Source of the DNA: Schmidtea polychroa
Lineage: Eukaryota
Reading direction: 5' to 3'
Length of the DNA stretch: 64,000 nt
NCBI GenBank assembly: GCA_044892525.1
Contig: CM097885.1
Span: 211,668,001-211,732,000, forward strand
The position numbers were made by a program, and so were the translations under genes. Shown one piece after another: positions 1-24,021 of the stretch. The stretch's first letter is position 1; each line of letters begins with the position of its first letter. Under the pieces are notes generated by a model. That model ran no database searches. It saw only the letters and a program-made list of their open reading frames with translations, and was not told where the DNA came from.

Positions 1-66
1 TATTGTTCCACCACCTCTATTACATGGAATATAAGAACTCATTTATTAATAATTTAAAATGAATCT

Positions 67-831: not shown

Positions 832-879
832 TTCTTTAGTAGTAAATTCATATAGTAAAAATCCTTATAGTAAAAATCC

Positions 880-1344
880 TTATAGTAGAGATTCTAGATC
901 ATTATAAATTTCTTGAATTATAGATTCAAAATCCTGCGTATGCCCCTTTCCCTCTCCCTTATTCAATCTATACAAAACATATAAACTTAAAATACCACAT
1001 ATTTTAGTATTCAAAGGTTGAACTTGTAAAGAGTTAAAAGTATAACCATTTGGGGAATCAATCGGAGAACCCCTCAAGAGATAATCTTCAACTTCTTTAG
1101 TAGGTTTAATCCCAAAAGAATCAAAGTAGATAGATTTCTTATATATACAAACCCAATGAGATCCTTTTTCATTTGAATTTTGATAATTGATTATTATATT
1201 CAGGGGACTCTCCAGACTTGATAATTCATCATTCATTAATATTTTAATTTTTAAATTTAAATAATTTGCATAATCTTTTAAATCAAAATTTGTTTTTGCA
1301 TTTATTCCAAATGTTTTTAAAAAATCTAATATTGAAGGAGTCAT
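880..1344 (-). CDS. Adenain-like cysteine protease (C5/Ulp1 fold), element A
   Basis: GSHWV (catalytic His), YFDSFG (Asp), QVQ...KICG (oxyanion Gln, catalytic Cys). Confidence 0.9.
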   Translation of the reverse strand: MTPSILDFLKTFGINAKTNFDLKDYANYLNLKIKILMNDELSSLESPLNIIINYQNSNEKGSHWVCIYKKSIYFDSFGIKPTKEVEDYLLRGSPIDSPNGYTFNSLQVQPLNTKICGILSLYVLYRLNKGEGKGHTQDFESIIQEIYNDLESLL

Positions 1345-1366
1345 TTTGTATTTTAAAACTTCGTAT

Positions 1367-2261: not shown

Positions 2262-2283
2262 TTTAATGGTATCAAAAATGGTA

Positions 2284-2862
2284 TCATAGTTCGAAGGGCT
2301 TCAAGTATAATCCTTTACCATTTTTAGTTTTACAAAGGCATCCATTCTTTAAAGATTTACATATTTTTTTTAAATCTTCTTTATCTTTTGAAGATAAAGA
2401 TTCAGATGTAGAAATTTGATTTTTTAAAAAATCATTTAAACCTCTACCTTTATAAGGATCAAGATAGAGACCTTTGCCCTGAGACTTTTGCCGACTCCCC
2501 TCATATGGATTAAGATAGAGACCCTTTCCAACGGACACTCCCCCTTTAGCTTGCCCTACCTTCTTCATTGAATCGATTTCAGTTTGTAGTTTTTCTTTTT
2601 CTAGGTCTGTCTTTTGAGATTCTTTAGCTTTTTGAACTGTAGTTGCAATTCCTCCAGCTATTCCAGCAGCACCTGATAAACCAGCAATGATTGCAGGTAT
2701 TAAAGCACCTAATGGAAGAATGCCACCTTCTTTAGCTTCGTGGAGCTTCGCTCTAACTTGTTCTTTTACATGTTTTCCAATAAAATATTTTTTACCATCA
2801 ATTACTACTGATTTATTTTTATTTGAATTTATTAATTCTTGCAAAGATTCTTCAGTTGTCAT
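2284..2862 (-). CDS. Putative virion core/membrane-active precursor with GG-ILPL hydrophobic segment and three GKGLYLxP repeats
   Basis: EGGILPLGALIPAIIAGLSGAAGIAGG followed by GKGLYLNPY, GKGLYLDPY and GKGLYLKPF. The Met at 2862 is the more plausible start. Confidence 0.6.
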   Translation of the reverse strand: MTTEESLQELINSNKNKSVVIDGKKYFIGKHVKEQVRAKLHEAKEGGILPLGALIPAIIAGLSGAAGIAGGIATTVQKAKESQKTDLEKEKLQTEIDSMKKVGQAKGGVSVGKGLYLNPYEGSRQKSQGKGLYLDPYKGRGLNDFLKNQISTSESLSSKDKEDLKKICKSLKNGCLCKTKNGKGLYLKPFEL

Positions 2863-2878
2863 TTTATAATAAATAAAA

Positions 2879-3670
2879 ATGGATACTTGGAAACCAATTT
2901 TAAATAGACATAAGAGTAAATTCAATAATAAAGTATTTCCTGATAATTTTAGATTATTAATTGTTGGTTCTTCTGGATGTGGAAAGAATGTACTTGTTTT
3001 GAGAATGTTACTTGAAGATGATTTTTTAGATTATAATAATTTAATCTTTTATTCTACAACCATAAATCAACCAGAATTACAACTTTTGAAATGTGGATTT
3101 GAAAATAAATTAACTAAAAAAGCAATAATTGATATTTTTAAAAATCAACATAGGTGTCCTGAAGAAGTTTTTCAACCTTGTGATATGGTTGATTGGTATA
3201 AGGAAAAGATTTTAGAATCAGATATTAGTAATAAAAATGATTATATTTGTGAAGAAGGGCAGGAGGCAATTCAAGTTTTATTCTCTAATAAACCTGAAGA
3301 TGTTTTACATTGTGATTTACTTCCTAAAGATAAAAAGAATCTAGTTATATTTGATGATGTTGTTAATATGAAAAATCAAGAGATTCAAAAGAGTTACTTT
3401 ACACGAGGTCGACATAATAATTGTAATGTTATTTATATATCTCAAACATATTATGCTTTAGATAAAAATTCAATAAGAAATAATTCCAATTGTTTTATAT
3501 TTTTTAAATTAGATCGCCGTGATAAGAATATGATTTATAATGATTTATTTTCAAATGTTGAACCTGATAAGAATATGTTTGATATGTTTGTTGATAATCA
3601 TTGGAAAGAAAAATATAATTATATTTATTTGGATAGAGAAGAAGCTGAAATATGGAAAAGTTTGTTTTAG
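2879..3670 (+). CDS. A32/FtsK-like genome-packaging ATPase, element A
   Basis: Walker A GSSGCGKN (GKT to GKN variant), Walker B LVIFDD, arginine motif TRGRH, ISQTY, IRNN. Confidence 0.92.
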   Translation: MDTWKPILNRHKSKFNNKVFPDNFRLLIVGSSGCGKNVLVLRMLLEDDFLDYNNLIFYSTTINQPELQLLKCGFENKLTKKAIIDIFKNQHRCPEEVFQPCDMVDWYKEKILESDISNKNDYICEEGQEAIQVLFSNKPEDVLHCDLLPKDKKNLVIFDDVVNMKNQEIQKSYFTRGRHNNCNVIYISQTYYALDKNSIRNNSNCFIFFKLDRRDKNMIYNDLFSNVEPDKNMFDMFVDNHWKEKYNYIYLDREEAEIWKSLF

Positions 3671-3681
3671 GGCTTGTCGAC

Positions 3682-5067
3682 TTAAACATCTGTTTTCTGT
3701 AGTTCATTATTATAAAATCCACCTAATATTTTTTCATTATTTAAATCAAAGATGCTATATGTTATTGGAGTTGTATAATTTATTTTATTTATAATAAAAA
3801 TTTCATTTGTCCATTTTGCTGTGAATCCTTTTTCAAATTTATTTTTATATTTAAATATTCTTACTCGGTCACCAATTTTAAACTTTGGTTTTTCAATAAC
3901 ATCATTTTCAATATTTACCACTTTAATGGTTTCAGGCTTCATGGAAGCATTTAAAGGTGTTAATTTTATAGAACTATGTACATCATTATTATATTCATTT
4001 ACAATCTTTTGTAACAATTCATTGTTCCATTTTTGTTTTCCAATAGCAGTAAAATATTTCCACATTTTATTTTTTAATGTTCTATTTAATCTTTCAACTA
4101 CGACTGTTTTTCCTTCGTTTTCTGTTGAATATAATTTAATATCATTTTCATTTAAAAACTTTGTAAAAACTTTGTTATAAAATTCTGTTCCTTTATCACA
4201 CCATAAATATTTTGGGATTCTTTGATTTTCTTCAAATATATTTTCAAATGCTTCTGTAATAGAATATCCTGTTTTATTTTCTAAACACCTTGCAAAAGCA
4301 AATCTTGTATATAAATCTATTACAGTTAAAATTATTTTATATTTTTCAGGGTCTGATGATTTGGGCATAAAGACTAAATCTGCAGACCATGTTTGATCTT
4401 TTTCATGTACTTGAACTTTTAAATATTTTTTATTTTTTCTAAATTCATGGTGTAATTCCTTTGCATATTTTATTTCTGATTCTGTTGGGGTTTGTAAACT
4501 AGTCTTGGATATATTCTCAAGGGATCTTTCAATGTCTGCTTGTTCGATAATCTTTTTATAAGCAACATCTTTTGCTATTCTAGGAAGTCTTGCACCCATG
4601 GTGATCGGACTGTGTCCTAAGCCTATGAAAATCTTACCTTTCATTGCTAATTTAACTAGAGCTCTTTGAATCTTTTCTTGGGTTGATGGATTTTGGATAC
4701 TATTTAAATCATGTATTAAATTCACATCTGCAACATGTCTATCTCTAAGATTTGTTGAATTGTATGCAATGTCATGTTTTAAAGCTGCTTGATCAATTCT
4801 ATTTATTGGTTCTTCTCCTTGTTTGGGATTATTATTTTCATCTAATCTAATATCTAATCTTGTTCCTGGTCCGGTGTAGTTGTGTTTAAATAAATGTCTT
4901 TCACCTGGATATTTTTCTGTAGTAAAAGGTTTTAATATTGAAGATGTTGTTTTTGAAGATTGTAGATCGCCTCCTGTATGTTTTTTAGTTTTTAAATGAC
5001 TTGCTTTATGATGTCTTGTAACTTGACAATTACAAGTTTCACATCTCCAATATTTATTTAGAGACAT
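3682..5067 (-). CDS. Zn-finger + parvovirus-type PLA2 domain + retroviral-type (rve) integrase fusion
   Basis: N-terminal CxxC...H..H finger; HNYTGPGT and DQAALKHDIAY PLA2 motifs; DDE core SADLV / WCDKGTEF / VVERLNRTLK; no C-terminal chromodomain. Confidence 0.9.
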   Translation of the reverse strand: MSLNKYWRCETCNCQVTRHHKASHLKTKKHTGGDLQSSKTTSSILKPFTTEKYPGERHLFKHNYTGPGTRLDIRLDENNNPKQGEEPINRIDQAALKHDIAYNSTNLRDRHVADVNLIHDLNSIQNPSTQEKIQRALVKLAMKGKIFIGLGHSPITMGARLPRIAKDVAYKKIIEQADIERSLENISKTSLQTPTESEIKYAKELHHEFRKNKKYLKVQVHEKDQTWSADLVFMPKSSDPEKYKIILTVIDLYTRFAFARCLENKTGYSITEAFENIFEENQRIPKYLWCDKGTEFYNKVFTKFLNENDIKLYSTENEGKTVVVERLNRTLKNKMWKYFTAIGKQKWNNELLQKIVNEYNNDVHSSIKLTPLNASMKPETIKVVNIENDVIEKPKFKIGDRVRIFKYKNKFEKGFTAKWTNEIFIINKINYTTPITYSIFDLNNEKILGGFYNNELQKTDV

Positions 5068-5096
5068 TTTAAAATGTTAAAATATCAGGGATTATA

Positions 5097-6372
5097 TTAA
5101 GAATCTCCCCTAACATTTTCGATTATTGAAATCTTTCCACCATATAATTTCATTTCTATTTTCTTTTCTTCTAATATTAATGTATATACTTTAGCTTTAA
5201 AATTAGAATCCTTTGTTACATGAAGTGTAACATCAACATTATTTATGGCTAATCGATCATCTTGGTCTGATACATTTATACAAAATATAGAATATAAATT
5301 TTTGAAATCTTCTAAACTTAATTGCGGTTCAACTTTGAAATCATAACATGTTTCAATATAATTTAGATATGGGAATATGTTTTCATTATTTTCAATATTA
5401 AATTCCATTCTATTTATTGGATAATAAGAACTATTTAATTGAATTTGTATTGTTTTTAAATTATCATCTCCAATCTTTTGAATAAATAGATTGTTATTTT
5501 TTTGGAAAGATGAATCTGTTTCTTTGAATCCAATCAAGATATATCTTGGTCGGTATGCTAAATTTGCTACCTTTATAGAATATGTTGAACCCTCTGTCAT
5601 ACTAAATTCACTACAGATTCTATTTAAATAATTTACATTTATAGACTTGTTGGAATTTAATCTTTCAAGGAGTTTAATCTCAGAATGTGGGTTTAATGTC
5701 CATTCAGGTATATGTAATTCAAGTGTTGATAATTTTAATTTAGCTTTTGTATCTACAGCTCCATAGAACAATCTTTTATCACCTTCTACTCTATTACAGA
5801 TGAATTCTATAAAAACATTATGAAGTATACGATTATAGTTTTGAAGGAATCCAAACAAGTGTTTTAATTCAAAATAACCTTCAAAGTTCAGCTCTTTTAT
5901 GGTAACCATGGTTTACATCTAAACCATCTTTATCTAAATCCCCTTTATTAACATCAGGAATCCAACCTGTTAATTCACCATATTCGTTTTTATAATCACA
6001 ACCAGTCAAAATAAAATTTAACATTGTAGAATATACTCCCGGATGCAAAACAGTTTCAATTTCTGATGATCCTAGTTTTAATCTCATGTTGGAGAATAAA
6101 TTTGGAAAGAAATTATTTTCTAGGGTTATATCTTTGTTTGCTTCAATTTCTAATTCTACTTTGTAATATAATTTGGCATTACAAATATCTATTGGGTTTG
6201 ATGTTTGAAGAGATTGAAAAACTATATCACCCCTACGATTTAAGTTTGCAATAGATCCTGAAGTTGGAGAGATTTTTAAAATATCATTTTTTTTAATTTC
6301 ATGAGTAAATTCTTTATTATAATCAAGATTTAATTTATTTTTTTCTTGAATTTTAAGATTTATGTTATTCAT
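5097..6372 (-). pseudogene. Major capsid protein (double jelly-roll) of element A, split by a frameshift near 5881-5909
   Basis: Two overlapping ORFs (163 aa and 270 aa) together give LENNFFPNLFS...HPG, ELKHLFGF..YNRIL, RPRYILIGF and YSIFCINVS.Q, typical of Polinton MCPs. Confidence 0.8.
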
Positions 6373-6428
6373 TTTTATATATTAAAATTTACACACACAA
6401 AATAGGATTAATTAAATATATTATGTAA

Positions 6429-6671: not shown

Positions 6672-6744
6672 GCTCTAATAGCTTAGTGGTAATAGCACTC
6701 GACTGCATTGCCAATACCAATGGGTTCAAATCCCATTTCGGTCA
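6672..6744 (+). ncRNA. tRNA-like Pol III-type unit 2 (GCA at anticodon position but anticodon stem unpaired)
   Basis: 73 nt; A-box TAGCTTAGTGG, D-stem GCT/AGC, perfect T-arm ATGGG-TTCAAAT-CCCAT, T8 terminator immediately after. Confidence 0.65.
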
Positions 6745-10587: not shown

Positions 10588-10600
10588 GTCTAGGGCTACC

Positions 10601-12048
10601 AGTAGTGAGAAGTGAGGAGTATAAACCAAGCCAAATATAAAGTATTACGTAATATTTGTATGGGTACCCTAGGGGGTGGTATGGTGTTACACAATTTTGT
10701 AAAATTACATAATCACATATACAATGACGTGATTACATTTTTGGTTACGTAATAATCGGTTTTTAATTTACGTCATAATTGACCCCTCTTACGTAATAAT
10801 TGACCTTTAACCGCTACATCATATTTAACCTTTGACCCCTTACATAATAATTGACCTTTGACCTCTTATGTAATAATTATACTTCATTAGAGTAGTGAGG
10901 AGTATAAACCAAGCCAAATATCCCTGGAAAAAATTCAATACATTTTGATAGAGTAGTGAGAAGCGAGGAGTATAAACCAAGCCAAATATACAGTATTACG
11001 TAATATTTGTATGGGTACCCTAGGAGGGTGGTATGGTATTACATAATTTTGTAAAGTTACGTAATTATATATAAAGTGACGTAATAATTGTTTTTAATTT
11101 ACATCATAATTGATCCCCCTTATGTAATAATTGACCTTTGGCCTCTTACATCATATTTAACCTTTGACCCCTTACATAATAATTGACCTTTGACCTCTTA
11201 TATAATAATTATACTTCATTAGAGTAGTGAGGAGTATAAACCAAACCAAATATCCCTGGAAAAAATTTAATACATTTTGATAGAGTAGTGAGAAGCGAGG
11301 AGTATAAACCAAGCCAAATATACAGTATTACGTAATATTTGTATGGGTACCCTAGGGGGTGGTGTGGTATTACATAATTTTGTAAAGTTACGTAATTATA
11401 TATAAAATGACGTAATTATATTTTTGATTACGTAACAATTGTTTTTAATTTACATCATAATTGACCCCCTTATGTAATAATTGACCTTTGACCTCTTCCA
11501 TCATATTTAACCTTTGACCCCTTACATAATAATTTACCTTTGACCTCTTATGTAATAATTATACTTCATTAGAGTAGTGAGGAGTATAAACCAAGCCAAA
11601 TATCCCTGGAAAAAATTTAATACATTTTGATAGAGTAGTGAGAAGTGAGGAGTATAAACCAAGCCAAATATACAGTATTACGTAATATTTGTATGGGTAC
11701 CCTAGGGGGTGGTGGTATGGTGTTACATAATTCTGTATAATTTTATTATAGATATATATTTATTGAATTATAAACATATATAAGAAAAAGTCATACATAC
11801 ATTTTTGAACCCGAGTACTATAATGATGACAATGAATGTGATAAACACTCGGTNNNNNNNNNNNNNNNNNNNNNNNNNNNNNNNNNNNNNNNNNNNNNNN
11901 NNNNNNNNNNNNNNNNNNNNNNNNNNNNNNNNNNNNNNNNNNNNNNNNNNNNNNNNNNNNNNNNNNNNNNNNNNNNNNNNNNNNNNNNNNNNNNNNNNNT
12001 TGTTCACAACAATAAAAACTTTGACTATTTCACAATAACAACGTAAAA
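10601..12048 (+). repeat. Left TIR of element B, with three ~330-350 bp tandem units plus a partial unit (N gap 11854-11999)
   Basis: Units begin at 10601, 10952, 11284 and 11634; reverse-complement match to 24022-25104. Confidence 0.93.
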
Positions 12049-12092
12049 GGCAAATTATATTGATAAAAATTTTAAAAATTATATAAAACATT

Positions 12093-12284
12093 TTATTTCA
12101 AGTTAAATACATCTGTGTGGTATGCTTTACGCATTTCAGCTAATAAGATATGGACTGATTGATCTCTTTTAAAGTCGTGACAGCATGGACACCCATTGGG
12201 GCATGACAATCTCATAGAATCTTTGCAAACAATGCAATTTTCAATGCATCTAGTGTCAGACCTTAGAACCATATCGTAGTGCAA
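12093..12284 (-). CDS. Small Cys-rich hypothetical protein (possible Zn-binding); 5' end uncertain
   Basis: CIENCIVCKDSMRLSCPNGCPCCHDF; frame stays open ~110 nt further upstream without an ATG. Confidence 0.45.
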   Translation of the reverse strand: MHYDMVLRSDTRCIENCIVCKDSMRLSCPNGCPCCHDFKRDQSVHILLAEMRKAYHTDVFNLK

Positions 12285-12518
12285 CTCTAAAAGTTGTTCT
12301 ATATTAATACCTGTTAAACGAAATATTTTATTTATAAGTAACTCTGGTGCACAATAATCTATGGTATTATTCCTGGGTATAATTCTTGAAACTTCTTTAA
12401 AATTACTTCAAATAAGTAAACTAGATATAAAGATTATTAATTATAAATAAAAATATATTCTTTACCTTTTGACATTTTTTCTAACTACTAAAAACAAAAT
12501 CAATACAAACAAAATTAA

Positions 12519-12965
12519 TTAATTAATTAACATTTTAATTTCTGAGATAATGTTCTCTACATAGTGATTATAGTCTAAAGTTTTTATTCCAAGTAATACA
12601 ACCTTTCCGCTTGAAAATACATTAACACAAACTGGATTATACTTTTGAAGACGTAAGGCAGGAAATATTTCCGGTTCAAACATACATTTAGCTTTTTGTT
12701 GTAATTCGTATAAATTTATAAATTTACCGATATCAGCAGTTACTGTAATGGACTGAATTTGTAAATCTTGTATCTTATATTTCAAATCAACTAATTTAAG
12801 AGGTTGCTTGCATCCCATTATCCGACATCTACCCGACTTGAAAAATATAATTGGATACTTCCCACTTCTATCCACAACTTGTTGGGGTTTACCTAATGGG
12901 AATTTCATGTTTTTGACTAAACACTTACCTTTATAATTAATGTTGCTCAATAATAATGAAGTCAT
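12519..12965 (-). CDS. Compact TATA-binding-protein (TBP)-like protein encoded by the Maverick
   Basis: Two TBP-repeat signatures: SNIN...IIFFKSGRCRIMGCK and IQSITVTADIG..INLYEL......FEPEIFPAL.L....PV.VNVFSSGKVVLLGIK (compare TBP YEPELFPGL...LLIFVSGKVVLTGAK). Confidence 0.85.
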   Translation of the reverse strand: MTSLLLSNINYKGKCLVKNMKFPLGKPQQVVDRSGKYPIIFFKSGRCRIMGCKQPLKLVDLKYKIQDLQIQSITVTADIGKFINLYELQQKAKCMFEPEIFPALRLQKYNPVCVNVFSSGKVVLLGIKTLDYNHYVENIISEIKMLIN

Positions 12966-13039
12966 GTAATAAAATTTAAATAATTTTTATATACTTATAA
13001 TAATAAATTTAAACAAATATAAACAATAATATTAATGAA

Positions 13040-13678
13040 ATGAGATTAATTAAGATGGAATTAAGAAATGATGCCGTTTATCAAATTGTAGGTCCCAGTG
13101 GTAGTGGAAAAACTTTATTTGTTTGTAAATTATTACAATCGAATATGTTCAAATCAAAATTTAATAAAATATACTGGCATAAGGGAGCTGATGACGAGCA
13201 TGGTATGACACAAGATCAGTTTTGTAAATTAAAAATGAATATAATGAAGGGATTTGATAAAAATTGGTCATCTAGATTACATCAAGGTGATGCTATAATT
13301 ATTGATGATTTATATCAGGAAGCAAATAAAGAGAAAGATTTTAATAATTTATTTACAAAAACCAGTAGACATATCGGAGTAACGGTTATTTTTATAACAC
13401 AAAATTTATTTCATCAAGGCGGAAGTCATCGAACGCGTAATTTGAATGTACAATATTTAGTTATTTTCAAAAATCCTCGAGACGCAACTATAATTGATTT
13501 TCTCGCAAGACAGGCTTATCCTAATGATAGAAGATATTTAATTGAACCCTTCCAAGATGCAACAAAGATAGCACATGGGTATTTATTTTTCGATTTTACT
13601 CAACAATGTCCAGATGATTTACGTGTTAGAACAGATATTTTCAATGAAAAAGGTGTTACGATTTATAAACAAAAATGA
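13040..13678 (+). CDS. Packaging ATPase, element B
   Basis: GPSGSGKT, IIIDD, FTKTSRH, FITQNLF, YLVIFKNPRD, GYLFFDF.Q...DDLRVRTDIF (classic Maverick ATPase). Confidence 0.95.
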   Translation: MRLIKMELRNDAVYQIVGPSGSGKTLFVCKLLQSNMFKSKFNKIYWHKGADDEHGMTQDQFCKLKMNIMKGFDKNWSSRLHQGDAIIIDDLYQEANKEKDFNNLFTKTSRHIGVTVIFITQNLFHQGGSHRTRNLNVQYLVIFKNPRDATIIDFLARQAYPNDRRYLIEPFQDATKIAHGYLFFDFTQQCPDDLRVRTDIFNEKGVTIYKQK

Positions 13679-13700
13679 AATACATTATTATTATTTAAAA

Positions 13701-13838
13701 ATGTCATTTAAAAAAGTTATAGTTCAACGTGAAAAAGTTACAAAGCAGAAAGAAAACAAAAGAAATACTAAACGGAAAGAAAAAACTATAAATAAGACTA
13801 AAAAATCAATGAAAAAGAAGAGTTGGATTAAATTATAA
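13701..13838 (+). CDS. Very small lysine-rich ORF (45 aa), possible DNA-condensing peptide
   Basis: MSFKKVIVQREKVTKQKENKRNTKRKEKTINKTKKSMKKKSWIKL; a similarly basic ORF precedes the related fragment at ~36060. Confidence 0.35.
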   Translation: MSFKKVIVQREKVTKQKENKRNTKRKEKTINKTKKSMKKKSWIKL

Positions 13839-13869
13839 ACAAATTAATTAATAAAATACATCATTAACA

Positions 13870-14196
13870 ATGAAATTACAACGTAGCTTACCATATTTTA
13901 ACGCCTTGCTAAAGGCTCCAAATAATAAAAGGATGAGTATATTACAAGCTTTTCCATCATTTGTTATTGATGATTTACTCGAAGCTATTGTTAACATAGT
14001 TCGTGGTAATGTAAATATTAGTAAAGCTAAAAGGTTTGTATTAAAAAGACATAAGAAATCTCTTTTATCATTAGTTAACACAAAAAATCGAAATCTAATG
14101 AGAAAAATAATGTATAAACAACAAGGCGGATTTTTAGGTACATTAATTCCAATTGTATTATCGGCTATAAGCACAATTTCGTCATTAAATTCTTAA
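13870..14196 (+). CDS. Conserved small Maverick protein with C-terminal QxGG-FL hydrophobic tail (PW-like)
   Basis: L.E.IVNIVRGNV.IS....LKRHK..L..L and QQGGFLGTLIPIVL; degraded homolog at 36290-36600. Confidence 0.75.
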   Translation: MKLQRSLPYFNALLKAPNNKRMSILQAFPSFVIDDLLEAIVNIVRGNVNISKAKRFVLKRHKKSLLSLVNTKNRNLMRKIMYKQQGGFLGTLIPIVLSAISTISSLNS

Positions 14197-14280
14197 AATA
14201 TAATATCATAATGGGTGCTAAGAATTCATTACCGGATAAACATAATTTAGATTTAAATATATTAACATCATGTTGTAATA

Positions 14281-15403
14281 ATGAAGGAAACATTTTCCAA
14301 AAAGGTCAAATCAAAGAAGAAAATATTAGAGAAAAAACTCAAAACGATTTGGACAAACCCGAAAGATCCAGATGGTTTTGGTGGTGTAGAAAATCTTGCA
14401 AAAAGAGTAAATAAATCAAAGAAAGAAACTCAAAAATGGTTATCTAATCAATTAGCCTACAGTCTAAATAAACCAATATTAAAAAGATTCCCCACGAGAT
14501 CTTATAAAACATTTGGTGTTAATGATTTATGGCAAATGGATTTAATGGAAATGATTCCATTTTCAAAAACTAATAAAGGATACAAATATATTTTGACATG
14601 TATTGATGTATTTAGTAGATACGCTCGTGCTATCCCAACAAAATCTAAATCAGCTAATGACATGGCTGATGCATTAAAAACATTATTTGCTGACGGACAG
14701 CCTCGTAATTTACAAACAGATTTGGGTAAAATTATAAATTAAATAATTTTAATTAATTTTAAATTTAGGTAAAGAATTTTATAATAGCAAAGTTAAAGAA
14801 ATTATCAAAGGAATAAATCATTACTCAGTATTTTCACAATATAAAGCAGCGCACGTGGAAAGATTCAATCGTACTTTAAGAGATCGTTTGAAAAAATATT
14901 TTGTATATCAAGGCAATAAAACGTGGATAAATGTATTGTTGAAAATAATTTATAGTTACAATTTTTCACCTCATAGAGGAATAAATGGAATGAGACCAAT
15001 CGATATTTATTCAACAAATAATATTGATACTTGGATATCACAACAAGATAAATCAAAAACAAAAAAGCCGAAATATAAAGTAGGAGACCATGTTAGAATA
15101 AGTAAAATCAGTGCTTCTCCATTCATCAAGAATTTTGATAACAATTGGAGTGATTAAGTTTTTAAAATATCGAAAATAGATACTAATCAAAATCCGGTCA
15201 TGTACTTTATTACAGATAATGAAAACGATCAAGTCAGTGGCAAATTCTACGAACCAGAACTACAAGTCATTCCATCACCCACAATCTTCAGAATTCAAGA
15301 GATTTTAAAAACTAAATCGGACGGGAAATATAAACAATACTATGTGAAATGGCATGGTTATAAACATCCTAGCTGGATATCTGAAAACCAATTGATTAAA
15401 TAA
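14281..15403 (+). pseudogene. Chromodomain-bearing rve integrase of element B, with a 43-nt intron (14726-14768) and one nonsense codon (TAA 15155-15157)
   Basis: WQMDLM, LTCIDVFSRY, QTDL|G|KEFYN restored by splicing, VERFNRTLR, NWSD*VF (conserved E replaced by stop, same frame continues), YYVKWHGY...SWI chromodomain. Confidence 0.9.
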
Positions 15404-15408
15404 ATATT

Positions 15409-16431
15409 ATGAAGGAAAACCAGTTTTATATGATTTTACCTAGTAATAGTTGTCCTCTTATTTATCCTGATAATAATGCTAGTAATTTTAAAGTTGAATT
15501 TCAAAACCCAATTTATTTGAATGGGAAGTGGGAAGTAGCTTTGATTGATTTTACATTTGTGTATAATCATTTTCCGTATTACAGTAATTCATGGGTACAA
15601 TACGAATTTAAAAAATCATGCGAAGAAACTAAATACTTGAAAATTGATAATCAAAACAAAATCTTAGAAATTTTAAATTCTACATATAATCCAGATGTTG
15701 ATGTGTTCTTGGAAAGATATGAAAACTTAGTGATAGTTTGTCCACATGTTCCATTTAAAATATCATTTCTTGACACCAAACATGCATCTAAGTTTGAATT
15801 AAAAACCATATCAATCATTAGCAAAACTGACCATTGTTGAATTAAACTACCTAAATTTACTGAAAATAATATCATTGAACAAATTGGGATAACTATAAAT
15901 TATGATATCAAGACAAAATTCGAACATTATTTTGAAGATGAATTATTCTTAACTACTTTATCAGAGTTGCGAGGGTATTTAATGACAATTAATCCATCTC
16001 CATTTAAAGAAATACATCTTCAAAATCAAGAATTAGTAAAAATAACACTTGTAGATGATATTTCAAATATTACCTTTGATCAAAAATTAACAAAAGCTTT
16101 AGGATTAAAGAATCAAACTTATAATGAAAAAGACTTTGTTGGTGTGAAAATTCCAAAAATATTTAAAATTCATCAACAAATGTTTATTTATTCTAATATC
16201 ATTGAACCAATAAATGTTGGTGATGTAAGAGTTCCTCTATTAAAATCGATATGGATTAAAAGATATGAACAGGGAGAGGTTGTACAGTTAGAAATAAAGA
16301 ACCCAACGTACCTTCCAATTTCATCTTCATCTATAAACAACATTGAAATTAATATTCGCAACGATAGTGGAAATTTAGTTAAATTTTCAAAAGACACCAA
16401 AACACATTTAACACTACATTTTCGTAAAAAA
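15409..16431 (+). pseudogene. Minor capsid protein (PX/penton-like) with in-frame TGA at 15838-15840
   Basis: FYMILPSNS....YPDN.ASNF......PIYL.G.WEVAL and MFIYSNIIEP..VGD..VPLL, P.YLP......I.I.IRND.G..V.F, LTLHFR; both halves are in the same frame. Confidence 0.85.
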
Positions 16432-16833
16432 ATGAATAATCCTGATATTGTAAACTTTTATAGTAATAGTCAATCTGGTGGAGATTTACCATATTTTGTT
16501 GGTAAACAATATGGAACAGGTTGGTTAAAAACAATAGGTCGATTTGCTTTACCAATTCTTAGACGCATGGGTAATTTTGGTATGAAAACTGCACATGATG
16601 TAATAAATAACAATTCAAAAATTCTACCTGCTTTAAAATCAAATGTTTTATCTGAAATTAAACATTCACTACCTGATGTAATTCAACATTTGCCTACTGT
16701 AATTAATAAAGTATTTGATGTTTTTAATAAACAAGAGAATGAACAAAAAGGTGGAATGATTAAACGCAGAAAAACATTAAAGAAGCATATAAACAAAAGA
16801 ATGAAAGGCTTTGGAACTATATTCGAAAAATGA
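16432..16833 (+). CDS. PZ-like core protein precursor (in frame with the penton ORF)
   Basis: MNNPDIVNFY..SQSGGDLPYFVGKQYGTGWLK..GRFALPILR, basic C-terminus; QxGG motifs. Confidence 0.7.
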   Translation: MNNPDIVNFYSNSQSGGDLPYFVGKQYGTGWLKTIGRFALPILRRMGNFGMKTAHDVINNNSKILPALKSNVLSEIKHSLPDVIQHLPTVINKVFDVFNKQENEQKGGMIKRRKTLKKHINKRMKGFGTIFEK

Positions 16834-18056
16834 TTAGTGCAAAATCTGAATTATGTATTTTTGATAGACCATCACCTCAAGCAGTAATTGAACATGGTTC
16901 ATTTGAAGATATTTATCCAACGAATTCAATTACGGATACTGGTACCTCTTCAATTCAATTTTACATTAACGGATCTCAAACCGAATATTTAGATTTGAAT
17001 GATACTTTACTTTATCTTCAGTTGAAAGTTGTAAATAATGTAGGTGAAAATATTTCTGATGATTCTGTTGTAACTGCAAACAATTTCTTTTTCCAAACTC
17101 TTTTTAAAGAAGCTGAATTAATTTTTAATTCTATTAAAGTTGAAGGAGGAAATGATACATTTGCTCATAAAGCATTAATCGAAACCATATTAAATTACAA
17201 TCATGATACAAAACGTACATGTTTAGAAGGTATGGGGTACAGTGAAGATGATAATATAAGAAAAGCGTGGATTGCAAAATCTAAACCATTTTCATTATGT
17301 TCACCAATACAATTTGATTTTATGGATCAACCAAAATATTTATTACCTGGTGTTAGTGTCCAAATTAAATTGACGAGATCAAGTCCATCACATAGTTTAA
17401 CATGTACAAAAGTAGAACCTAAAATTGAATTATTAGATGCAAAATTAATGGTAAGAAGAGTTCGAGTTGAACCATCCGTTTTAGCTGGTCATCAAATTGG
17501 ACTTGCTTCAAGAAATGCAATTTATCCTTTGAGAAGCAAGGAAGTTGTCGAATTTTCGTTACCTACTGGATCTTCTTCTTTTTATAAAGAACAAATCTTT
17601 GGTGATCGGCGATTACCAAATTTTATCCTTGTAACATTTCAAAGAAATAAAAGAAATAATGGATCACTAACACATTCTTATTCAATGTACGACCACAATA
17701 ATGTAAAATCAATAACTTTATTGAAAGGAAGCGACTATCGTGAAAAATATAGTCAAGATTTTGAAAATGATAATTATAGTACAAGTTATATGCAGTCAAT
17801 AATTAGAAACATGGGTTACCTTAATAAGAATATTAATTGTGGAATTAGTATGTCTGACTTTAAAGAAAAGTATCCATTCTTTACATTTGTATTGGCTCCA
17901 GACTTTGATCTTAATCAAAGTCAATTGCCACAGCAAGGAAATTTAAGACTTGATATTAAATTTGGAACACCTCTAACAGAATCAATTTCTGTAATAGTCT
18001 ATGGCGTCTTTGAAAAAGAGATTCAAATTACATCCAATCGTACAGTACTAGTGTAA
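16830..18056 (+). CDS. Major capsid protein (PY, double jelly-roll), intact ORF
   Basis: KSEL.IF..P..Q..IE.G.F..IYP, EYLDLNDTLLYL.LKV, QPKYLLPGVSV.IKL.RS, RLPNFILVTF, FFTFVLAPD, GNLRLDIKFG.PL. Confidence 0.95.
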   Translation: MISAKSELCIFDRPSPQAVIEHGSFEDIYPTNSITDTGTSSIQFYINGSQTEYLDLNDTLLYLQLKVVNNVGENISDDSVVTANNFFFQTLFKEAELIFNSIKVEGGNDTFAHKALIETILNYNHDTKRTCLEGMGYSEDDNIRKAWIAKSKPFSLCSPIQFDFMDQPKYLLPGVSVQIKLTRSSPSHSLTCTKVEPKIELLDAKLMVRRVRVEPSVLAGHQIGLASRNAIYPLRSKEVVEFSLPTGSSSFYKEQIFGDRRLPNFILVTFQRNKRNNGSLTHSYSMYDHNNVKSITLLKGSDYREKYSQDFENDNYSTSYMQSIIRNMGYLNKNINCGISMSDFKEKYPFFTFVLAPDFDLNQSQLPQQGNLRLDIKFGTPLTESISVIVYGVFEKEIQITSNRTVLV

Positions 18057-18153
18057 ATAAAATTTGAAAATGATTGGCTTGAACTATAAACCAAATTAGG
18101 AAACAATAATTATTAAAGATGAAGTAAGAATTTCATTTTTATTACTTTAATTT

Positions 18154-18504
18154 ATTGATAATAGTTCTATTCACATTGAATACATAGGTCGAAGATTGTT
18201 CGGAGCTGAATTTCTTGGAGTTTTTCCATTAGATAAAATACCATATATTGATGTAAACAAGGCTTTAATTGTAAATACTCAATCTTGTAATCTCAAGGAA
18301 GAGCATTGGCTCGCAGTTTATGTGAAACCGGAAAAAATATATGCATTTGATCCCATGGGGTTTTATTATCCTCCTCTATTAATATCAAAACTTCAATCAT
18401 TGTTAATGCCAATTGAATATAATAAAATTCGCTATCAAAGTCCATTGACAAAAACATGTGGGCAACATTGTTTAGCGTGGTTGAAGTCAATGAAAGATCT
18501 TTGA
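18154..18504 (+). CDS. Adenain-like protease of element B; start codon probably mutated (ATT at 18154 in place of ATG)
   Basis: FLGVFP.D, IVNT....EHWLA, FDPMG, YQ....TCGQHC; no ATG in the open frame upstream of 18196. Confidence 0.85.
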   Translation: MDNSSIHIEYIGRRLFGAEFLGVFPLDKIPYIDVNKALIVNTQSCNLKEEHWLAVYVKPEKIYAFDPMGFYYPPLLISKLQSLLMPIEYNKIRYQSPLTKTCGQHCLAWLKSMKDL

Positions 18505-18669
18505 ATATAAGAAAATTTAATCAAATAAATATTATCTTGTTAGTTTGTAATTTTTTATGTCATTCTACTAGTAAATATAATTTAATGGTATGTGATTATG
18601 TGATTGGTTTCTTGAATTTTATTGGTTACTATTTTATTGAATCATTGTTGTGTAATATGTAGTATATAA

Positions 18670-18937
18670 ATGAAAACAATTCATTTAAAAGTCACTTTTA
18701 TCAATACCCAAACTTTTGTAAGTTTTATGTAATTAATTAATTAATAATTCTCTTATAATGTTTTCTAGGTAATGAATTGCAACAACAACAACAATTACAA
18801 CAACTCAAATAACATGAATAACGTCAATAGCAAGATTTGCAACCACTCAAATAACATGAACAACAAAAACTTAAACACCAACAATGATAAAATGGTTCGA
18901 AATAATTCCAAGAAAATTAATGCAAACATGATAAAAT
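18670..18937 (+). CDS. Two candidate exons (18670-18717, 18769-18937) encoding an Asn-rich leader, separated by a 51-nt intron
   Basis: ATG at 18670; GTAAGT...TTTTCTAG intron 18718-18768 joins in frame to the N-rich ORF; second GTAAGT donor at 18938. Confidence 0.5.
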
Positions 18938-19232
18938 GTAAGTATTATATATATTTTTCAGTATTTAAAGATATTTTCATTTTAATTAAATTAATATTAA
19001 TTTAAATATTATATTTCATTTTAATTTATTTTACAAATTTGAATTTAAATTAATTTACTCAAAGTAAAAATTAAAACAATTTTGAATTTATTAGATAATA
19101 ATAATTTATGATTTTATTTAAATTTAATTATTTTAAATCAATTTAAATTTATCAATAAAAAAAAATTTTTTTTAATGCAATATTTTTAATTAAATTATAA
19201 TGTATACCATAACATAAGAAACAAATAAAGAC

Positions 19233-19722
19233 TTATAATATATTAGTATCAATTATTTTCCATATAGGTCTGATTGTTTCTTTTCCTTCTTTAAAACCCT
19301 GAATTTGAATTTTTATCATAAAATATGAATTTTCATTTTCTTTTTTAATATTTTCTAAAGCATAATCTTTATCACAATTCATAAATGTAAAGTTTTCATT
19401 GAATTGAATATTTTTATTGATAGCCAACAATAATTCTAAAATATTTTTTCTATCGATATCTCCAATTTTACCTACTTGTATATTATATAAACTCTGTTTC
19501 AAAGTTACAGGTTCCTAATAAAAAAAATTTAATTAATATTTGATTAAATGATATAAATATATTTACTTTAAATGAATAAGTTATTGGGTATTTTAAATAT
19601 TCCATAGAATATTGTAGGAACTGAACAGGAGATTTTCTAATAAGACTAACTGCCGATGTTGAATTTTCCTGTAGAATTAACTTTATTATATCTGAATTTA
19701 CTTGTTTCTCCATCTTTTTCAC
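19233..19722 (-). CDS. Orphan ~145-aa protein formed by splicing a 52-nt intron (19515-19566)
   Basis: Minus-strand GTAAAT...TTATTAG intron joins ORFs 19483-19722 and 19233-19502 exactly in frame (...YSFK|EPVTLKQSLY...). Confidence 0.6.
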
Positions 19723-20095
19723 TGAACTTTCTAGAATAATGATTAAGCAATACTAGATAATGATAATAAAATTACTTTTATATTGTTGCATCATTAAATA
19801 TAATAATTTCATGCACTCAGTATATATATTAATTTTAAAAATCGAGTTGACCAATTAGATTCTTTTTAACAAATCATTTTAATTTTATTGGATGAAAGAT
19901 TTTATGTGTGTGTATAGTATTTTTGATTTTTTAAATATTTATTTCTAATAATCAATTTGTGATGTTCATATATTCATTTTCATATATTCATTTTTATTTA
20001 TAATGCAATCCTTTGATAATTTCTTTTGAAACTTAGGTATCTTATATCCAAAGTTTTGTAATTCTTCCTTTCATGACAATGATTGTCATAAAACT

Positions 20096-23000
20096 ATGGA
20101 AAAATACTATGGCCAACCCCATAACCGTGTTATTTATTTTGTTTGCCCCATTTGTAATTCCACTGAAAAATTAAATTATTCTAACTTTTATGATCAACAT
20201 AAAGATCATTTAAATCGATTTAATCTTTTGAAGAAAAAACAAATTTTTAAATTACCAAATAATTTCTCAATTAATAAAAGGAAATCTGATTTGCCTATAA
20301 GTAACCCTCGTCCATCTAAAATTAAAAATTTAAATAATAATGATCAAATTATTATTCTCTCGGATTCTGAAGACGATGATGTAGTTTTAAATAATATGGT
20401 AACTCTTCCTGATTTTGAAAATGATGTGGATATAGATTTTCTATCTGACTCTCAAAATGGAGTTGATATAATAACTCTTTCTGACTCTGATGCCGAAATA
20501 ATTAATGATAGTACGATACAATATGGTGGATCATTAGAACCGGTTGTAAATTATGATTTACGTAAATCACATGCCATAGTTAAAATGATGGTTGAAAATT
20601 TAAATTTAAATTCTTTAACCGTACCCACGCCCTTAATTAATAAATTTAATAACGTTACCAGAGAAATGGGTTCTGTAAAGATTCAATTTTGTATAGAAGT
20701 GGAATTTGAAAAAGATGGAGAATTTCAATCTTTCGTCATTTCAAATTCTGCAAGACCCATGAGTGATACCTTTTTAGATGAAGGTATTGCTATTCTCAAT
20801 GAGAAAATTACTTTAATTAATGAAAAGGGAAGTAATTGGATTATTAATAAAATTAAAGAAATACATTTTGTTATTACAAAATTTTCTCAAATAAGTAGAT
20901 TGAGTGGGAGGGGTTCTCTACCAACTCCTAAATCATTATTAAATAAACATTGCGTAATGAATATTAACAATACGGATGATTTGTGTTTCATCTATAGCAT
21001 TTTGGCTATTTTGAAATACGATGACGTTGATGGCAATCATAGAAATCGAATTAGTAATTATAATTTGTCTGATCTAGTCTTTGATCCTTCTGACTTACCG
21101 CTGCGTCTCTGTAATATACCTAAATTTGAAGATAAAAATCCAGGGCTTTCGATTAATGTTCTTGCATACGATGAGGATGCTTTAGTGGATATTTTAAATA
21201 ATTCTGAAGTATTAAAACATCCTTATGTTGACATCATACATAGATCGAAAGTTGTAGGCGGAAGACCGACTAATTTAATTTTGTTGGAAAGCAGTGATTC
21301 TTTTCATTATATAGGAGTCACTAATCTTGATAGACTTTTAAATTGTCGTAATTCTACTGTTACTAGTACTCGAATTCAAAGTCTGTGGTGTAATCGCTGT
21401 TTAAATGGCTTCCGTACACTTGAATCTTTAGATAAACATAAAGGTTTATGTGAGAAAAATCAATTAGGAACAACTTTATATACTTTACCATTAAATAAGA
21501 ATTTATATTTTAATGATTGGTCTAAAACAGTTACTCCCCCTTTTGTGGTTTACGCTGACTTTGAGGCTATCTTACCTACTGATAATAGATATTTTCAAAG
21601 GCGCTTGCCGATTTCTGCAGGTCTTTTGCTAATAAATAATTTCACAGGGACTAAATTATATAAAAAATTTTTAGGGTTAGATTGTATTGTTAGTTTCCTT
21701 AAAGAGATTGAAAAAATTGGTATGAAAACAGTTTTACCTTATTTTTATAAAAATTCGAAAAAGAAAATTATTTTTACAGATGCTGACCTTATTTCTTTTT
21801 CTTCCGCAGTTATGTGTTATCTTTGCAAGAAAACTTTAGTAAACCCGACTAAAGATCATGATCACTTTACTGGTAAATATTTGGGAGCAGCTTGTTCAAC
21901 TTGTAATAATTCTCGTCAAATAAGATATGAATTTCCAATTGTTTTCCATAACTTGCGAGGGTATGATCTTCATCATATCCTCAAATACGGATTGAGTAGC
22001 TTTAAATCTTGGAATATTTCATGCATTCCAACGACAACTGAAAAGTTCTTAACATTATCTGCGAGAATAGGTGGTTTAAATATTAAATTTATCGATTCCT
22101 GCCAATTTATTAATAGTTCGTTAAATGACGCTGTTAAAACTCTTACTAATTTACCGATAACACGATCAGAATTTAGGGGAACCATTGTTAATAATAAAGG
22201 AATTTTCCCATATAATTTTGCCACTAGTCTTGAAGTGCTTCAGTCAACTCCCCAATTACCGCCAATTTGGGATGGTGTTACTGAAGACGAATATTCTATG
22301 GCTGAAATTATATGGAGGGAAACCAACTGTAATAACCTTTGTGATTATATGATGGTCTATCTAAAACTAGATGTCTTTCTTTTAGCTGACTTTTTCCAGC
22401 AGTTTCGAAATAAATCTTTAGCTCATAATCGTCTTGAACCTTTAAACTTCTTGGGCATTCCCGGTATGTCTTGGAATTCAGCTCTGATGACTTTAGACGA
22501 ACCCATCGAGTTGATTCAAGACATGGAGATGTTTAATTTCTTTGAGGGTGGTATAAGAGGGGGGTTGACATTTGTAAACAAACATTATGTTAATACAAAT
22601 GAAAATACTGAACTTCTATATATCGATAATAATAATTTGTACGGCTGGGCTCTTAGCCAAAAACTACCTAGGGGTGAATTTTCTTGGGTGACGGATGAGC
22701 CTGAATTAATTAATTTATTAAAAGACTGTGAATCTATTGATCTAGATTCACTTTCATATGGGTATACTATGGAAGTGGATCTAGATATTCCAACATCTAT
22801 TCACGATAAACTTAATGATTTTCCGGTTGCAGCTGAAAAAATGTGTGCTCCAGGATCTAAAGTGGAGAAGTTGATGCTTACACATTTACCCAAGAAGAAC
22901 TATGTTCTTCATTGGAAACTTCTACAACTTTATCTTTCTCTTGGAGTAAAAGTTACTCAAATTCACAGGGCTATCAAATTTCATCAGTCTACTATATTCA

Positions 23001-23956
23001 AAAATTACATTGACACAAACACCCAACTTCGAGCTGTGTCAACAAATACTCTTGATAAAAACTATTTTAAGCTTCTTAACAATAGTTTATATGGAAAGAC
23101 AGTCGAAAATTTGAAGAAACGATTGAACTTGAGATTGTGTAACTCAGCTTCTAAACTGATTACTTATTCCTCTAAACCCACATTTAAAAAGACTTATAAA
23201 ATAGATCATGACTTAATAGCCGTTCTATTAAATAAGGATTCAGTGTGTTTGGATAGACCTAGTTACATTGGTCAATCTGTACTGGATCTATCCAAATTAC
23301 GTATGTATCAGTTGCAATATATTGATTTACAAAAATATCGAGATGATTTTAGCTGTGAAATCAATATTATTGCAGGTGACACTGATTCCTTCTTTTTAGA
23401 GGTTAAAGGATGCAAATTAGATGTGCTTTTACCAGCTATGGTAAGAGATAACATGCTGGATACATCGAGAGCTCTTGATTCCGTCATTGGTAAATTCAAA
23501 GATGAAAATAAAGGGGGTAGATATAAGGAATGGGTGTTTTTAAGGCCTAAATGCTATAGCCTTTTGGGTGATAAAGAGAGCAACAAGGCTAAGGGAATAA
23601 CATTGAAGGGTACCGACTTAAAACATCAATCGTACCTTGATTGTTATCATAATAATTCGATGATTTCAGTACCACAATCTCGAATAGTAAGTAAAAATCA
23701 TCAGTTATTCACAATAAAAAATATAAAATTAGCCCTAACTAATAATGATGATAAGAGGCATTGGGTAAATAAAAATGAAAGTGTAGCATATGGTCATTAT
23801 AAAATAGTTAACACGGTTATGGGTCATAGTAACAATGCTGAAGTTAGTGATCCGGACGAAGAAAATGATCAATACGTTCAACCATATTTCCCAAATGATG
23901 ATTATGGTCACCCACACTTTCCATATGAAAGGGAACATCAATATGTTCTTGAATAA
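20096..23956 (+). CDS. Protein-primed family B DNA polymerase (pPolB) with N-terminal Zn-finger/terminal-protein region
   Basis: 1286 aa; exonuclease YADFE, FHNLRGYD, YLKLDV; polymerase DNNNLYG, KLLNNSLYGK, GDTDS, KCY, AKGI; endonuclease-VII-like DHDHFTGKYLGAAC..CN; frame open back to an AG acceptor at 20036. Confidence 0.96.
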   Translation: MEKYYGQPHNRVIYFVCPICNSTEKLNYSNFYDQHKDHLNRFNLLKKKQIFKLPNNFSINKRKSDLPISNPRPSKIKNLNNNDQIIILSDSEDDDVVLNNMVTLPDFENDVDIDFLSDSQNGVDIITLSDSDAEIINDSTIQYGGSLEPVVNYDLRKSHAIVKMMVENLNLNSLTVPTPLINKFNNVTREMGSVKIQFCIEVEFEKDGEFQSFVISNSARPMSDTFLDEGIAILNEKITLINEKGSNWIINKIKEIHFVITKFSQISRLSGRGSLPTPKSLLNKHCVMNINNTDDLCFIYSILAILKYDDVDGNHRNRISNYNLSDLVFDPSDLPLRLCNIPKFEDKNPGLSINVLAYDEDALVDILNNSEVLKHPYVDIIHRSKVVGGRPTNLILLESSDSFHYIGVTNLDRLLNCRNSTVTSTRIQSLWCNRCLNGFRTLESLDKHKGLCEKNQLGTTLYTLPLNKNLYFNDWSKTVTPPFVVYADFEAILPTDNRYFQRRLPISAGLLLINNFTGTKLYKKFLGLDCIVSFLKEIEKIGMKTVLPYFYKNSKKKIIFTDADLISFSSAVMCYLCKKTLVNPTKDHDHFTGKYLGAACSTCNNSRQIRYEFPIVFHNLRGYDLHHILKYGLSSFKSWNISCIPTTTEKFLTLSARIGGLNIKFIDSCQFINSSLNDAVKTLTNLPITRSEFRGTIVNNKGIFPYNFATSLEVLQSTPQLPPIWDGVTEDEYSMAEIIWRETNCNNLCDYMMVYLKLDVFLLADFFQQFRNKSLAHNRLEPLNFLGIPGMSWNSALMTLDEPIELIQDMEMFNFFEGGIRGGLTFVNKHYVNTNENTELLYIDNNNLYGWALSQKLPRGEFSWVTDEPELINLLKDCESIDLDSLSYGYTMEVDLDIPTSIHDKLNDFPVAAEKMCAPGSKVEKLMLTHLPKKNYVLHWKLLQLYLSLGVKVTQIHRAIKFHQSTIFKNYIDTNTQLRAVSTNTLDKNYFKLLNNSLYGKTVENLKKRLNLRLCNSASKLITYSSKPTFKKTYKIDHDLIAVLLNKDSVCLDRPSYIGQSVLDLSKLRMYQLQYIDLQKYRDDFSCEINIIAGDTDSFFLEVKGCKLDVLLPAMVRDNMLDTSRALDSVIGKFKDENKGGRYKEWVFLRPKCYSLLGDKESNKAKGITLKGTDLKHQSYLDCYHNNSMISVPQSRIVSKNHQLFTIKNIKLALTNNDDKRHWVNKNESVAYGHYKIVNTVMGHSNNAEVSDPDEENDQYVQPYFPNDDYGHPHFPYEREHQYVLE

Positions 23957-24021
23957 ATTTTGTATTGAAATAAAATTTTATTTAATATAATTATTGTTTT
24001 AGTTCTTATTTGTATCATTTA

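Follow-up and report, generated by a model that had tools for sequence, protein, structure and literature searches.

A short TATA-binding-protein-like gene within a Maverick-type element of Schmidtea polychroa and a candidate element-specific TATA variant

Two pairs of DNA-kinking phenylalanines are a canonical feature of the TATA-binding protein (TBP), whose acidic second-repeat stirrup is used by TFIIB and whose first-repeat helices serve as docking surfaces for TFIIA, NC2, Mot1 and TAF1. A diverged paralogue, TRF2 (also TBPL1 or TLF), acts on a subset of promoters; it has lost the kink phenylalanines together with TATA binding, while it keeps both helices and the binding of TFIIA and TFIIB. 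TBPs made by viruses are known from giant viruses, where they serve the viral polymerase in cytoplasmic factories, and from herpesviruses, whose vTBP mimics TBP, recognizes a non-canonical variant of the TATA box at late promoters and recruits host RNA polymerase II (Pol II) to them. Small elements of the Maverick/Polinton type are, to our knowledge, thought to depend wholly on host basal factors. Here we describe an intact open reading frame (ORF) of 148 residues for a short TBP-like protein, which lies within such an element in a stretch of 64,000 nt from Schmidtea polychroa (assembly GCA_044892525.1, contig CM097885.1, positions 211,668,001 to 211,732,000). This whole stretch is referred to as the window, and all coordinates are given with respect to it (Table 1).

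A chance ORF was rejected, as an ATG-initiated ORF of at least 148 residues was reached in only one of 60 first-order Markov simulations of 64 kb; length alone is suggestive, and it is homology that decides. The Pfam TBP model PF00352 matches the ORF with an E value of 1.1e-14 (54.4 bits, cut-off 22.9) in a single stretch, residues 68-131, which corresponds to the second repeat. Among the phmmer matches listed, 35 of 36 PDB sequences are TBPs. Archaeal TBPs rank best, with 1mp9_A at the top (E 2.1e-12), and human TBP (1cdw_A) and yeast TBP are found with E values of 1.7e-8 and 8.8e-8, respectively; to any solved TBP the ORF scores only 35-50 bits. The structural model calculated by AlphaFold with an alignment of 23 relatives (A1) is confident throughout, with a mean predicted local distance difference test score (pLDDT) of 95.0 and a predicted template-modelling score (pTM) of 0.84. 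Residues 1-62 of the model are helix-free, with four strand segments; residues 63-148 make up a full TBP repeat including both helices, and the ten strand segments (4 + 6) of both lobes form one saddle-shaped sheet. Foldseek returned 44 PDB matches at E ≤ 1e-3, all of them TBPs with both lobes covered, in alignments of 166-180 columns with TBPs of ~180 residues (TM(query) 0.67-0.79, identity 21-25%), and the further matches below these 44 are unrelated (E ≥ 8e-3). The N-terminal and C-terminal halves of the family also match each other in hhalign, with a probability of 91.8% and an E value of 7.5e-7 over 28 columns. AlphaFold, Foldseek over both lobes and hhalign thus bear out the TBP fold and the two pseudo-repeats which a preliminary description of the locus had proposed, and the ORF is a real TBP homologue with a predicted ten-stranded saddle. 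No second TBP-like copy was found in the window by tblastn with the ORF, the next best match having an E value of 1.6.

For a comparison of the two repeats, nine family members were aligned with seven canonical-length TBPs from the protein library (A2). In this alignment the family is without ~10-12 columns at the position of the first helix of repeat 1 and ~14 columns at the position of its second helix, and a few columns of the first stirrup are missing as well. The two convex-side helices per repeat that characterize the TBP family are therefore lacking in one of the repeats, repeat 1 being helix-less in the model and gapped at both helix positions. The two phenylalanine pairs are likewise incomplete, with three of the four residues kept and both of those of repeat 2 among them: A1 and A2 show no exception at F42, F101 and F117, and the column of the fourth kink phenylalanine holds a gap or a proline in all nine family members, in contrast to Phe or Tyr in all seven canonical-length TBPs. 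Loss of the one first-repeat phenylalanine had been recognized before and is confirmed, as is the retention of the other three. The change in the first repeat is, however, larger than had been stated, with both repeat-1 helices gone too in the model and in A2.

Further differences are seen in A2: the Asn of the second repeat is replaced by Ser in 9/9 family members, the second-repeat Val of canonical TBPs is Thr in the family, and R48 of repeat 1 is invariant in the family where 7/7 canonical-length TBPs carry Val or Ile. The second-repeat stirrup EPExFPALR is invariant, with E97, P98, E99, F101 and P102 present in 23/23 sequences of A1, and its residues align with EPE.FPG of archaeal TBPs in the phmmer alignment. 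Repeat 2 matches TBPs also in the GK..G.K strand pair. In total A1 contains 23 invariant columns among its 23 sequences (41-81% identity), which are clustered in the strands and in the stirrup E97-R105.

A search of 5.8 billion proteins yielded 31 relatives with identities from 99% down to 40%, 21 of them 144-161 residues long and 30 with a precomputed TBP domain. When 1.84 billion cluster representatives were scored, 938 matched at E ≤ 1e-3, 116 of them reaching E ≤ 1e-10; single full-length matches of 141-175 residues are frequent, and canonical TBPs, which match in two stretches, begin near E 1e-10. An N-terminal NIN[YD] motif is present in 75 of 186 fetched proteins and begins at residue 4-8 in 62 of these 75; the ORF thus has a conserved start, and an upstream exon is unnecessary. 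According to their architecture, 141 proteins of 135-260 residues were divided into 77 short, 28 canonical and 36 other or partial ones. In a neighbour-joining tree, from which the last 36 were left out, one side is made up of 76 of the 77 short-architecture proteins and 2 of the 28 canonical proteins, with weak bootstrap (perfect separation in 0 of 100 replicates, at most three proteins misplaced in 23 of 100). As the classes were taken from the same alignment as the tree and the bootstrap is weak, the short-architecture proteins may be said to form one group only roughly. A scan of GTDB, which covers bacterial and archaeal genomes only, gave 32 pattern matches, none of which was confirmed, and no family member; a scan of IMG/VR with A1 gave 25 pattern matches, one of them confirmed, and no member of the short family. 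The confirmed protein (L001, 1797-2345 on the plus strand of a 44.7-kb IMG/VR contig) is a canonical two-repeat TBP of 182 residues, flanked by a PolB C-terminus and the large subunit of ribonucleotide reductase, and its contig looks like a giant-virus fragment.

In the window the TBP-like gene lies inside the terminal inverted repeats (TIRs) of the element and is divergent from the gene of the packaging ATPase, from which it is 74 nt apart. Five of its relatives are found on contigs of the same size as that of an ATPase relative (20066, 14156, 10087, 6816 and 4192 nt), and cluster look-ups revealed two more such coincidences from the same sources, at 3759 and 1330 nt. Hence seven TBP-like relatives appear to share a contig with a Maverick ATPase, to go by equal contig sizes rather than by contig sequence. 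By the same equality of sizes we infer that the two genes are adjacent on the 1330-nt contig as they are here, because genes for 144 and 207 residues leave little room on it. The ATPase itself has 479 relatives at E ≤ 1e-10, mostly of 206-216 residues at ~97% coverage among the matches listed. We read the ORF as a genuine gene that is conserved in a single lineage of Mavericks associated with animals (adintovirus-like elements).

The element itself is delimited by inverted arms within 10601-12059 and 24038-25104 (1.1-1.5 kb), whose long pairs are 96-99% identical, with up to 308 nt at 99%. Its ends are flanked by a 4-nt direct repeat only, CTAC, which was read by eye and is weak as a target-site duplication, Maverick duplications being 5-6 bp long. 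A PolB gene, an rve integrase, long TIRs and a virion module (ATPase, protease and a weak capsid match) were all found, and by this gene content the element at 10600-25105 is a Maverick/Polinton with a predicted protein-primed PolB. The inverted arms and the gene set thus support the location inside a TIR-bounded Maverick given in the preliminary description. The same description had contrasted an intact TBP-like ORF with broken neighbours. Of these neighbours, the integrase has at least one reading-frame change (frameshift or intron), and the match of the protease goes no further than position 86 of the 179 in the model, either of which may reflect a break or an intron. The ORF is intact as described, although this says little on its own, as the insertion is young-looking and the ATPase and PolB genes are intact too, both being full length in comparison with their relatives. 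The insertion looks young because the TIRs are 96-99% identical.

A terminal motif, GGAGTATAAACC, is present in seven exact copies in the left TIR (plus strand) and in four exact copies and one with a single mismatch in the right TIR (minus strand), all of them pointing inward, where 0.27 are expected. The seven left-hand copies originally counted are therefore exact, and the five right-hand ones include the mismatched copy. All are carried on a ~350-nt tandem unit, of which the left TIR has 2.9 copies, and are not independent of one another. The outermost copy is located ~20 nt from each terminus, and it is the terminal ~40 nt that recur inside the TIRs. The core of the motif, TATAAAC[AC]A, occurs at 26 sites in the window compared to 6.1 expected. 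Between the arms, eight sites are found on the plus strand and none on the minus strand, with 0.68 expected and a maximum of five in 1000 simulations. TATAAA is followed by C[AC]A in 8/29 cases on the interior plus strand, in 0/18 on the interior minus strand and in 6/178 outside the element.

The plus strand, on which the interior sites reside, is the strand of the ATPase-to-protease block. One site is positioned 22 nt before the ATPase start and one 36 nt before the start of the adenovirus protein-X-like (PX-like) ORF; the capsid block contains two more, and a further one precedes the protease. No plus-strand gene lies upstream of the site at 13018, which thus does not represent a poly(A) signal of the gene block. 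The box of the TBP-like gene itself, TATATAAAA at 28 nt upstream, is different. Neither of the two further Maverick-like regions in the window has a TBP-like ORF in view, nor is the motif enriched in them. The proposal that the terminal motif is a candidate target of the TBP-like protein is, we infer, strengthened by the strand-specific enrichment of its core.

Apart from this motif, the TIR units harbor 13 direct-repeat sites similar to TGACCTTTGACC (0.23 expected), 9/13 of them in the left TIR, and most of the 39 TKACGTAA sites of the window, for which 5 are expected. The two kinds of site presumably resemble nuclear-receptor and bZIP sites, respectively, and the layout of the unit may resemble that of an adenoviral terminal repeat. 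With enhancer-like motifs adjoining each TATA copy, the TIR unit looks like a putative enhancer combined with a TATA box.

It is quite possible, if short of probable, that host Pol II is guided to TATAAAC[AC]A promoters by the minimal TBP which the element encodes. The protein would bind this element-specific TATA variant before the ATPase-to-protease block and, pointing inward, in both TIRs. Its second repeat with both phenylalanines would be seated on the TATA half of the motif. The other half, ...AAC[AC]A, which differs from the canonical box, would lie opposite the altered first repeat. The retained second-repeat stirrup would recruit host TFIIB and Pol II, while the missing repeat-1 helices would remove the docking surfaces of TFIIA, NC2, Mot1 and TAF1, so that the protein could work outside TFIID and escape the host regulators of TBP. 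As the TATA box upstream of its own gene differs, the protein may be made early and activate the block of virion genes, in the way that herpesviral vTBPs activate late genes. Doubtful in our estimation is the full picture of an animal Maverick lineage with a private promoter code, in which an early, helix-stripped TBP would read TATAAAC[AC]A in the TIRs as well as in front of the virion genes and would pass such promoters on to host TFIIB and Pol II, invisible to TFIID, TFIIA, NC2 and Mot1. If true, such a code would be the smallest known virus-type system of basal-factor substitution, with a natural minimal TBP.

Several observations weigh against a promoter function of this kind. TATA binding is not assured, because central DNA-contact positions differ, namely in the exchange of the second-repeat Asn for Ser in 9/9 members, and what is ascribed to the stirrup and to the lost helices comes from published work on TBP and would hold by analogy. 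The PolB, integrase and protease genes are without a TATA[AT]A within 100 nt upstream. Where a box is present in front of a gene, the spacing to the ATG, at 22-36 nt, would allow hardly any leader. One of the motif sites is situated within the PX-like coding sequence, the motif counts of the TIRs are inflated by the tandem duplication of the ~350-nt unit, and the case for co-occurrence with the ATPase comes from contigs of equal size, not from their sequence. Furthermore, several interior sites are near the 3' ends of upstream ORFs, and a terminator reading is possible for these sites since TATAAA is a minor variant of the poly(A) signal.

This last point leads to the view that the motif has nothing to do with the protein: host TBP would use TATAAAC[AC]A as an ordinary TATA box, or the sites would serve as poly(A) signals, and the mini-TBP would act elsewhere, for instance with RNA polymerase III or on host genes. 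Besides the sites close to upstream ORF ends, it can draw on the fact that TATAAA alone is a canonical box usable by host TBP. We consider it rather improbable, as the enrichment lies in the C[AC]A extension (8/29 on the interior plus strand versus 6/178 outside) and is absent from the two other Maverick-like regions, where no TBP-like ORF is in view. The protein might also act negatively, in that it occupies TATA boxes of the host or the element, or titrates TFIIB, without a full pre-initiation complex, and thereby dampens host transcription or silences the integrated element. With the two repeat-1 helices and one kink phenylalanine gone, productive assembly could be disabled, and the invariant stirrup would retain partner binding. 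Such a competitor or repressor, an option already raised in the preliminary description, is nonetheless unlikely, given that the whole DNA-facing sheet is strongly conserved and that an element-specific and strand-specific motif precedes the element's own genes, both of which fit a positive use better.

Alternatively, the protein could bend DNA at the terminal motif for protein-primed replication or integration and not for transcription. In linear replicons with protein-primed replication, A/T-rich origin cores are found close to the termini, and the outermost motif copies ~20 nt from the termini, as well as the reiteration of the terminal ~40 nt inside the TIRs, would agree with such a role. 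It leaves, however, the eight interior plus-strand sites next to start codons unexplained and an invariant stirrup of the TFIIB type without an obvious role, and is in our judgement quite improbable. That the gene is a mere passenger or pseudogene, i.e. a captured fragment of host TBP decaying in one insertion, is hardly credible. The protein is ~30 residues shorter than the TBP core and the nearby integrase and protease genes are interrupted, as one would expect of a decaying copy, yet the short form is a conserved family whose start and length are fixed, this family is linked to Maverick ATPases, the similarity to solved TBPs amounts to just 35-50 bits, and the model is confident over the whole length. 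A decaying host copy was therefore rejected. The preliminary description had named a one-off relic of this sort as a refuting outcome; what was found instead is a family of ~145-160 residues with a fixed N-terminus and relatives linked to the Maverick ATPase. Nor is the gene a recent capture of an animal host TBP, since it scores only 35-50 bits against solved TBPs and the fold search gave matches of no more than 21-25% identity.

Table 1. Features of the Maverick-type element (window coordinates; a dot denotes no strand)
Feature	Position	Strand	Remarks
Maverick/Polinton-type element, ~14.5 kb	10600-25105	.	inverted arms; ends from alignment and sequence
Left TIR	10600-12059	+	~350-nt tandem unit; 7 inward GGAGTATAAACC copies; masked N run 11854-11999
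Small Cys-rich ORF	12093-12284	-	downstream of TBP-like gene, same strand; no Pfam match
TBP-like gene, 148 aa, intact, ATG start	12519-12965	-	repeat 1 ~residues 1-62; repeat 2 ~residues 63-148
Divergent intergenic region, 74 nt	12966-13039	.	TATATAAAA 28 nt before TBP-like ATG (-); TATAAACAA 22 nt before ATPase ATG (+)
Eight interior TATAAAC[AC]A sites	starts 13018, 13664, 13834, 14113, 15329, 16332, 16788, 18085 (span 13018-18093)	+	
A32/FtsK-type packaging ATPase, intact	13040-13678	+	Pox_A32 28.8 bits (cut-off 22.8)
Adenovirus protein-X-like ORF, weak match	13870-14196	+	Adeno_PX E 1.4e-4, 22.2 bits, below cut-off 25
rve integrase, at least one reading-frame change (frameshift or intron)	14281-15157 (3' bound approximate)	+	rve E 1.4e-10, N part
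Capsid-gene block	15409-18056	+	DJR-like_dom E 0.0026, 17.4 bits, below cut-off 27 (weak)
Adenain-like cysteine protease, N-terminal half only	18196-18504	+	Peptidase_C5 E 1.7e-4, 21.7 bits (cut-off 21.3), model positions 1-86 of 179
PolB ORF, 1286 aa	20096-23956	+	relatives' domains PF03175 and PF02945; presumed polymerase motifs KLLNNSLYG, GDTDS
Right TIR	24038-25105	-	4 exact and 1 one-mismatch inward GGAGTATAAACC copies; masked N run 24098-24246

Regarding the other genes of the element, the Cys-rich ORF may be a second accessory gene. Between the ATPase gene and the PX-like ORF the plus strand contains an ORF (13575-13838) with a very lysine-rich C-terminal part, which may encode a small basic protein of the core type; an internal ATG of this ORF is closely preceded by one TATAAACAA site. 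In the integrase the rve part is followed by a weak rve_3 match, and its C-terminal part matches the other integrase of the window in a different frame. The PolB ORF itself gave no direct match to a Pfam PolB model and none to the PDB; its relatives carry the organellar/viral PolB domain PF03175 and the endonuclease-VII domain PF02945, the best of them being 62% identical and 1242 residues long, and the two stretches KLLNNSLYG and GDTDS are what we take to be polymerase motifs. One PolB relative of 36% identity (P0411) comes from a 17-kb contig that NCBI assigns to a metagenome-assembled genome of a bacterium; this is probably a Maverick-like contig that was mis-binned.

The window has a G+C content of ~21-40%, mostly below 30%. 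Its first part (1-6400) contains a second, divergent Maverick-like gene set that is cut by the window start, with an A32-type ATPase ORF at 2879-3670 (plus strand) and capsid-like ORFs beside an integrase-fusion ORF. The ORF at 3682-5067 (minus strand) combines an rve integrase core with an N-terminal domain similar to parvovirus-type phospholipase A2 (PF08398, E 4e-9). In the visible part of this set tblastn found no TBP-like ORF. Remnants of a Maverick related to the studied element, with a masked run of N among them, are present at 36269-37771; they comprise a PX-like piece of 50% identity, the N part of an integrase (60%) and, on the other strand, a 33-residue ATPase fragment (70%). In addition, a tRNA-like Rfam match of 32.4 bits (cut-off 29) at 6672-6744 (plus strand), which was not called by ARAGORN, an ORF at 39649-40272 (plus strand) matching rhodopsin-family seven-transmembrane receptors (E 3e-31), which marks the host as an animal, and the remains of a long-terminal-repeat retroelement pol gene at 46556-48514 (minus strand; reverse transcriptase, RNase H, integrase zinc and core domains) were observed.

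With respect to the literature, the sole trace of a TBP or a TATA box in what was accessible on Mavericks and Polintons, the adintovirus paper and its preprint included, is a 'TBP' gene label on the map of a MELD virus in the legend of Fig. 5 of Starrett et al. 2021 (PMC8502044). The portions of that paper available to us, section 3.4 among them, contain no discussion of this TBP, and the accessible part of a 2026 preprint on a framework for Polinton-like viruses mentions TATA, TBP and TFIID zero times. The statement that Polintons possess no basal transcription factor, made in the preliminary description, accordingly holds for the core gene set and has to be qualified in view of the label on a related virus map. 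The architecture described here and its matched motif appear to be undescribed so far, while TBP-like factors encoded by viruses are already known. A stripped-down TBP with a TATA variant of its own would show how a 15-kb nuclear element times and insulates its virion genes, and such a mini-TBP would be a natural experiment on the surfaces of TBP that are dispensable. The gene would also be a marker for tracing a Maverick lineage in genomes and metagenomes, and it may bear on the movement of transcription factors between cells, Polinton-like elements and larger DNA viruses.

Compared with the described systems, the TBP on the MELD-virus map is likewise a TBP homologue in a mid-size linear double-stranded DNA virus or element with an adintovirus-like PolB, as far as a figure legend allows the comparison. 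The TBP-like proteins that giant viruses (Nucleocytoviricota) encode, among them the putative TBP of Heterosigma akashiwo virus and the TFIID-like proteins of mimivirids, have the TBP fold too (Foldseek probability 1.00). They are longer, however, and their identity to the element protein is 8-18% (BFVD matches), with none showing a helix-less first repeat among the matches. An origin from giant viruses was rejected on the basis of this identity, as opposed to 21-25% to cellular and archaeal TBPs. Herpesviral vTBPs of the BcRF1/UL87/ORF24 class are also among the fold matches (ranks 18, 26 and 29), with 8-13% identity, and are large multi-domain proteins; the likeness would be a functional analogy only, common descent not being supported. 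No match was named as TRF2. In comparison with TRF2, the element protein keeps three of four phenylalanines and loses the repeat-1 helices. With cellular and archaeal TBPs (PF00352; 1mp9, 1cdw, 1ytb) it shares the saddle over both lobes, the EPExFP stirrup and the second-repeat phenylalanine pair. It differs from them in being ~30 residues shorter, in its helix-less repeat 1, in the loss of one phenylalanine, in an identity of 21-25% and in a gene that resides on a mobile element.

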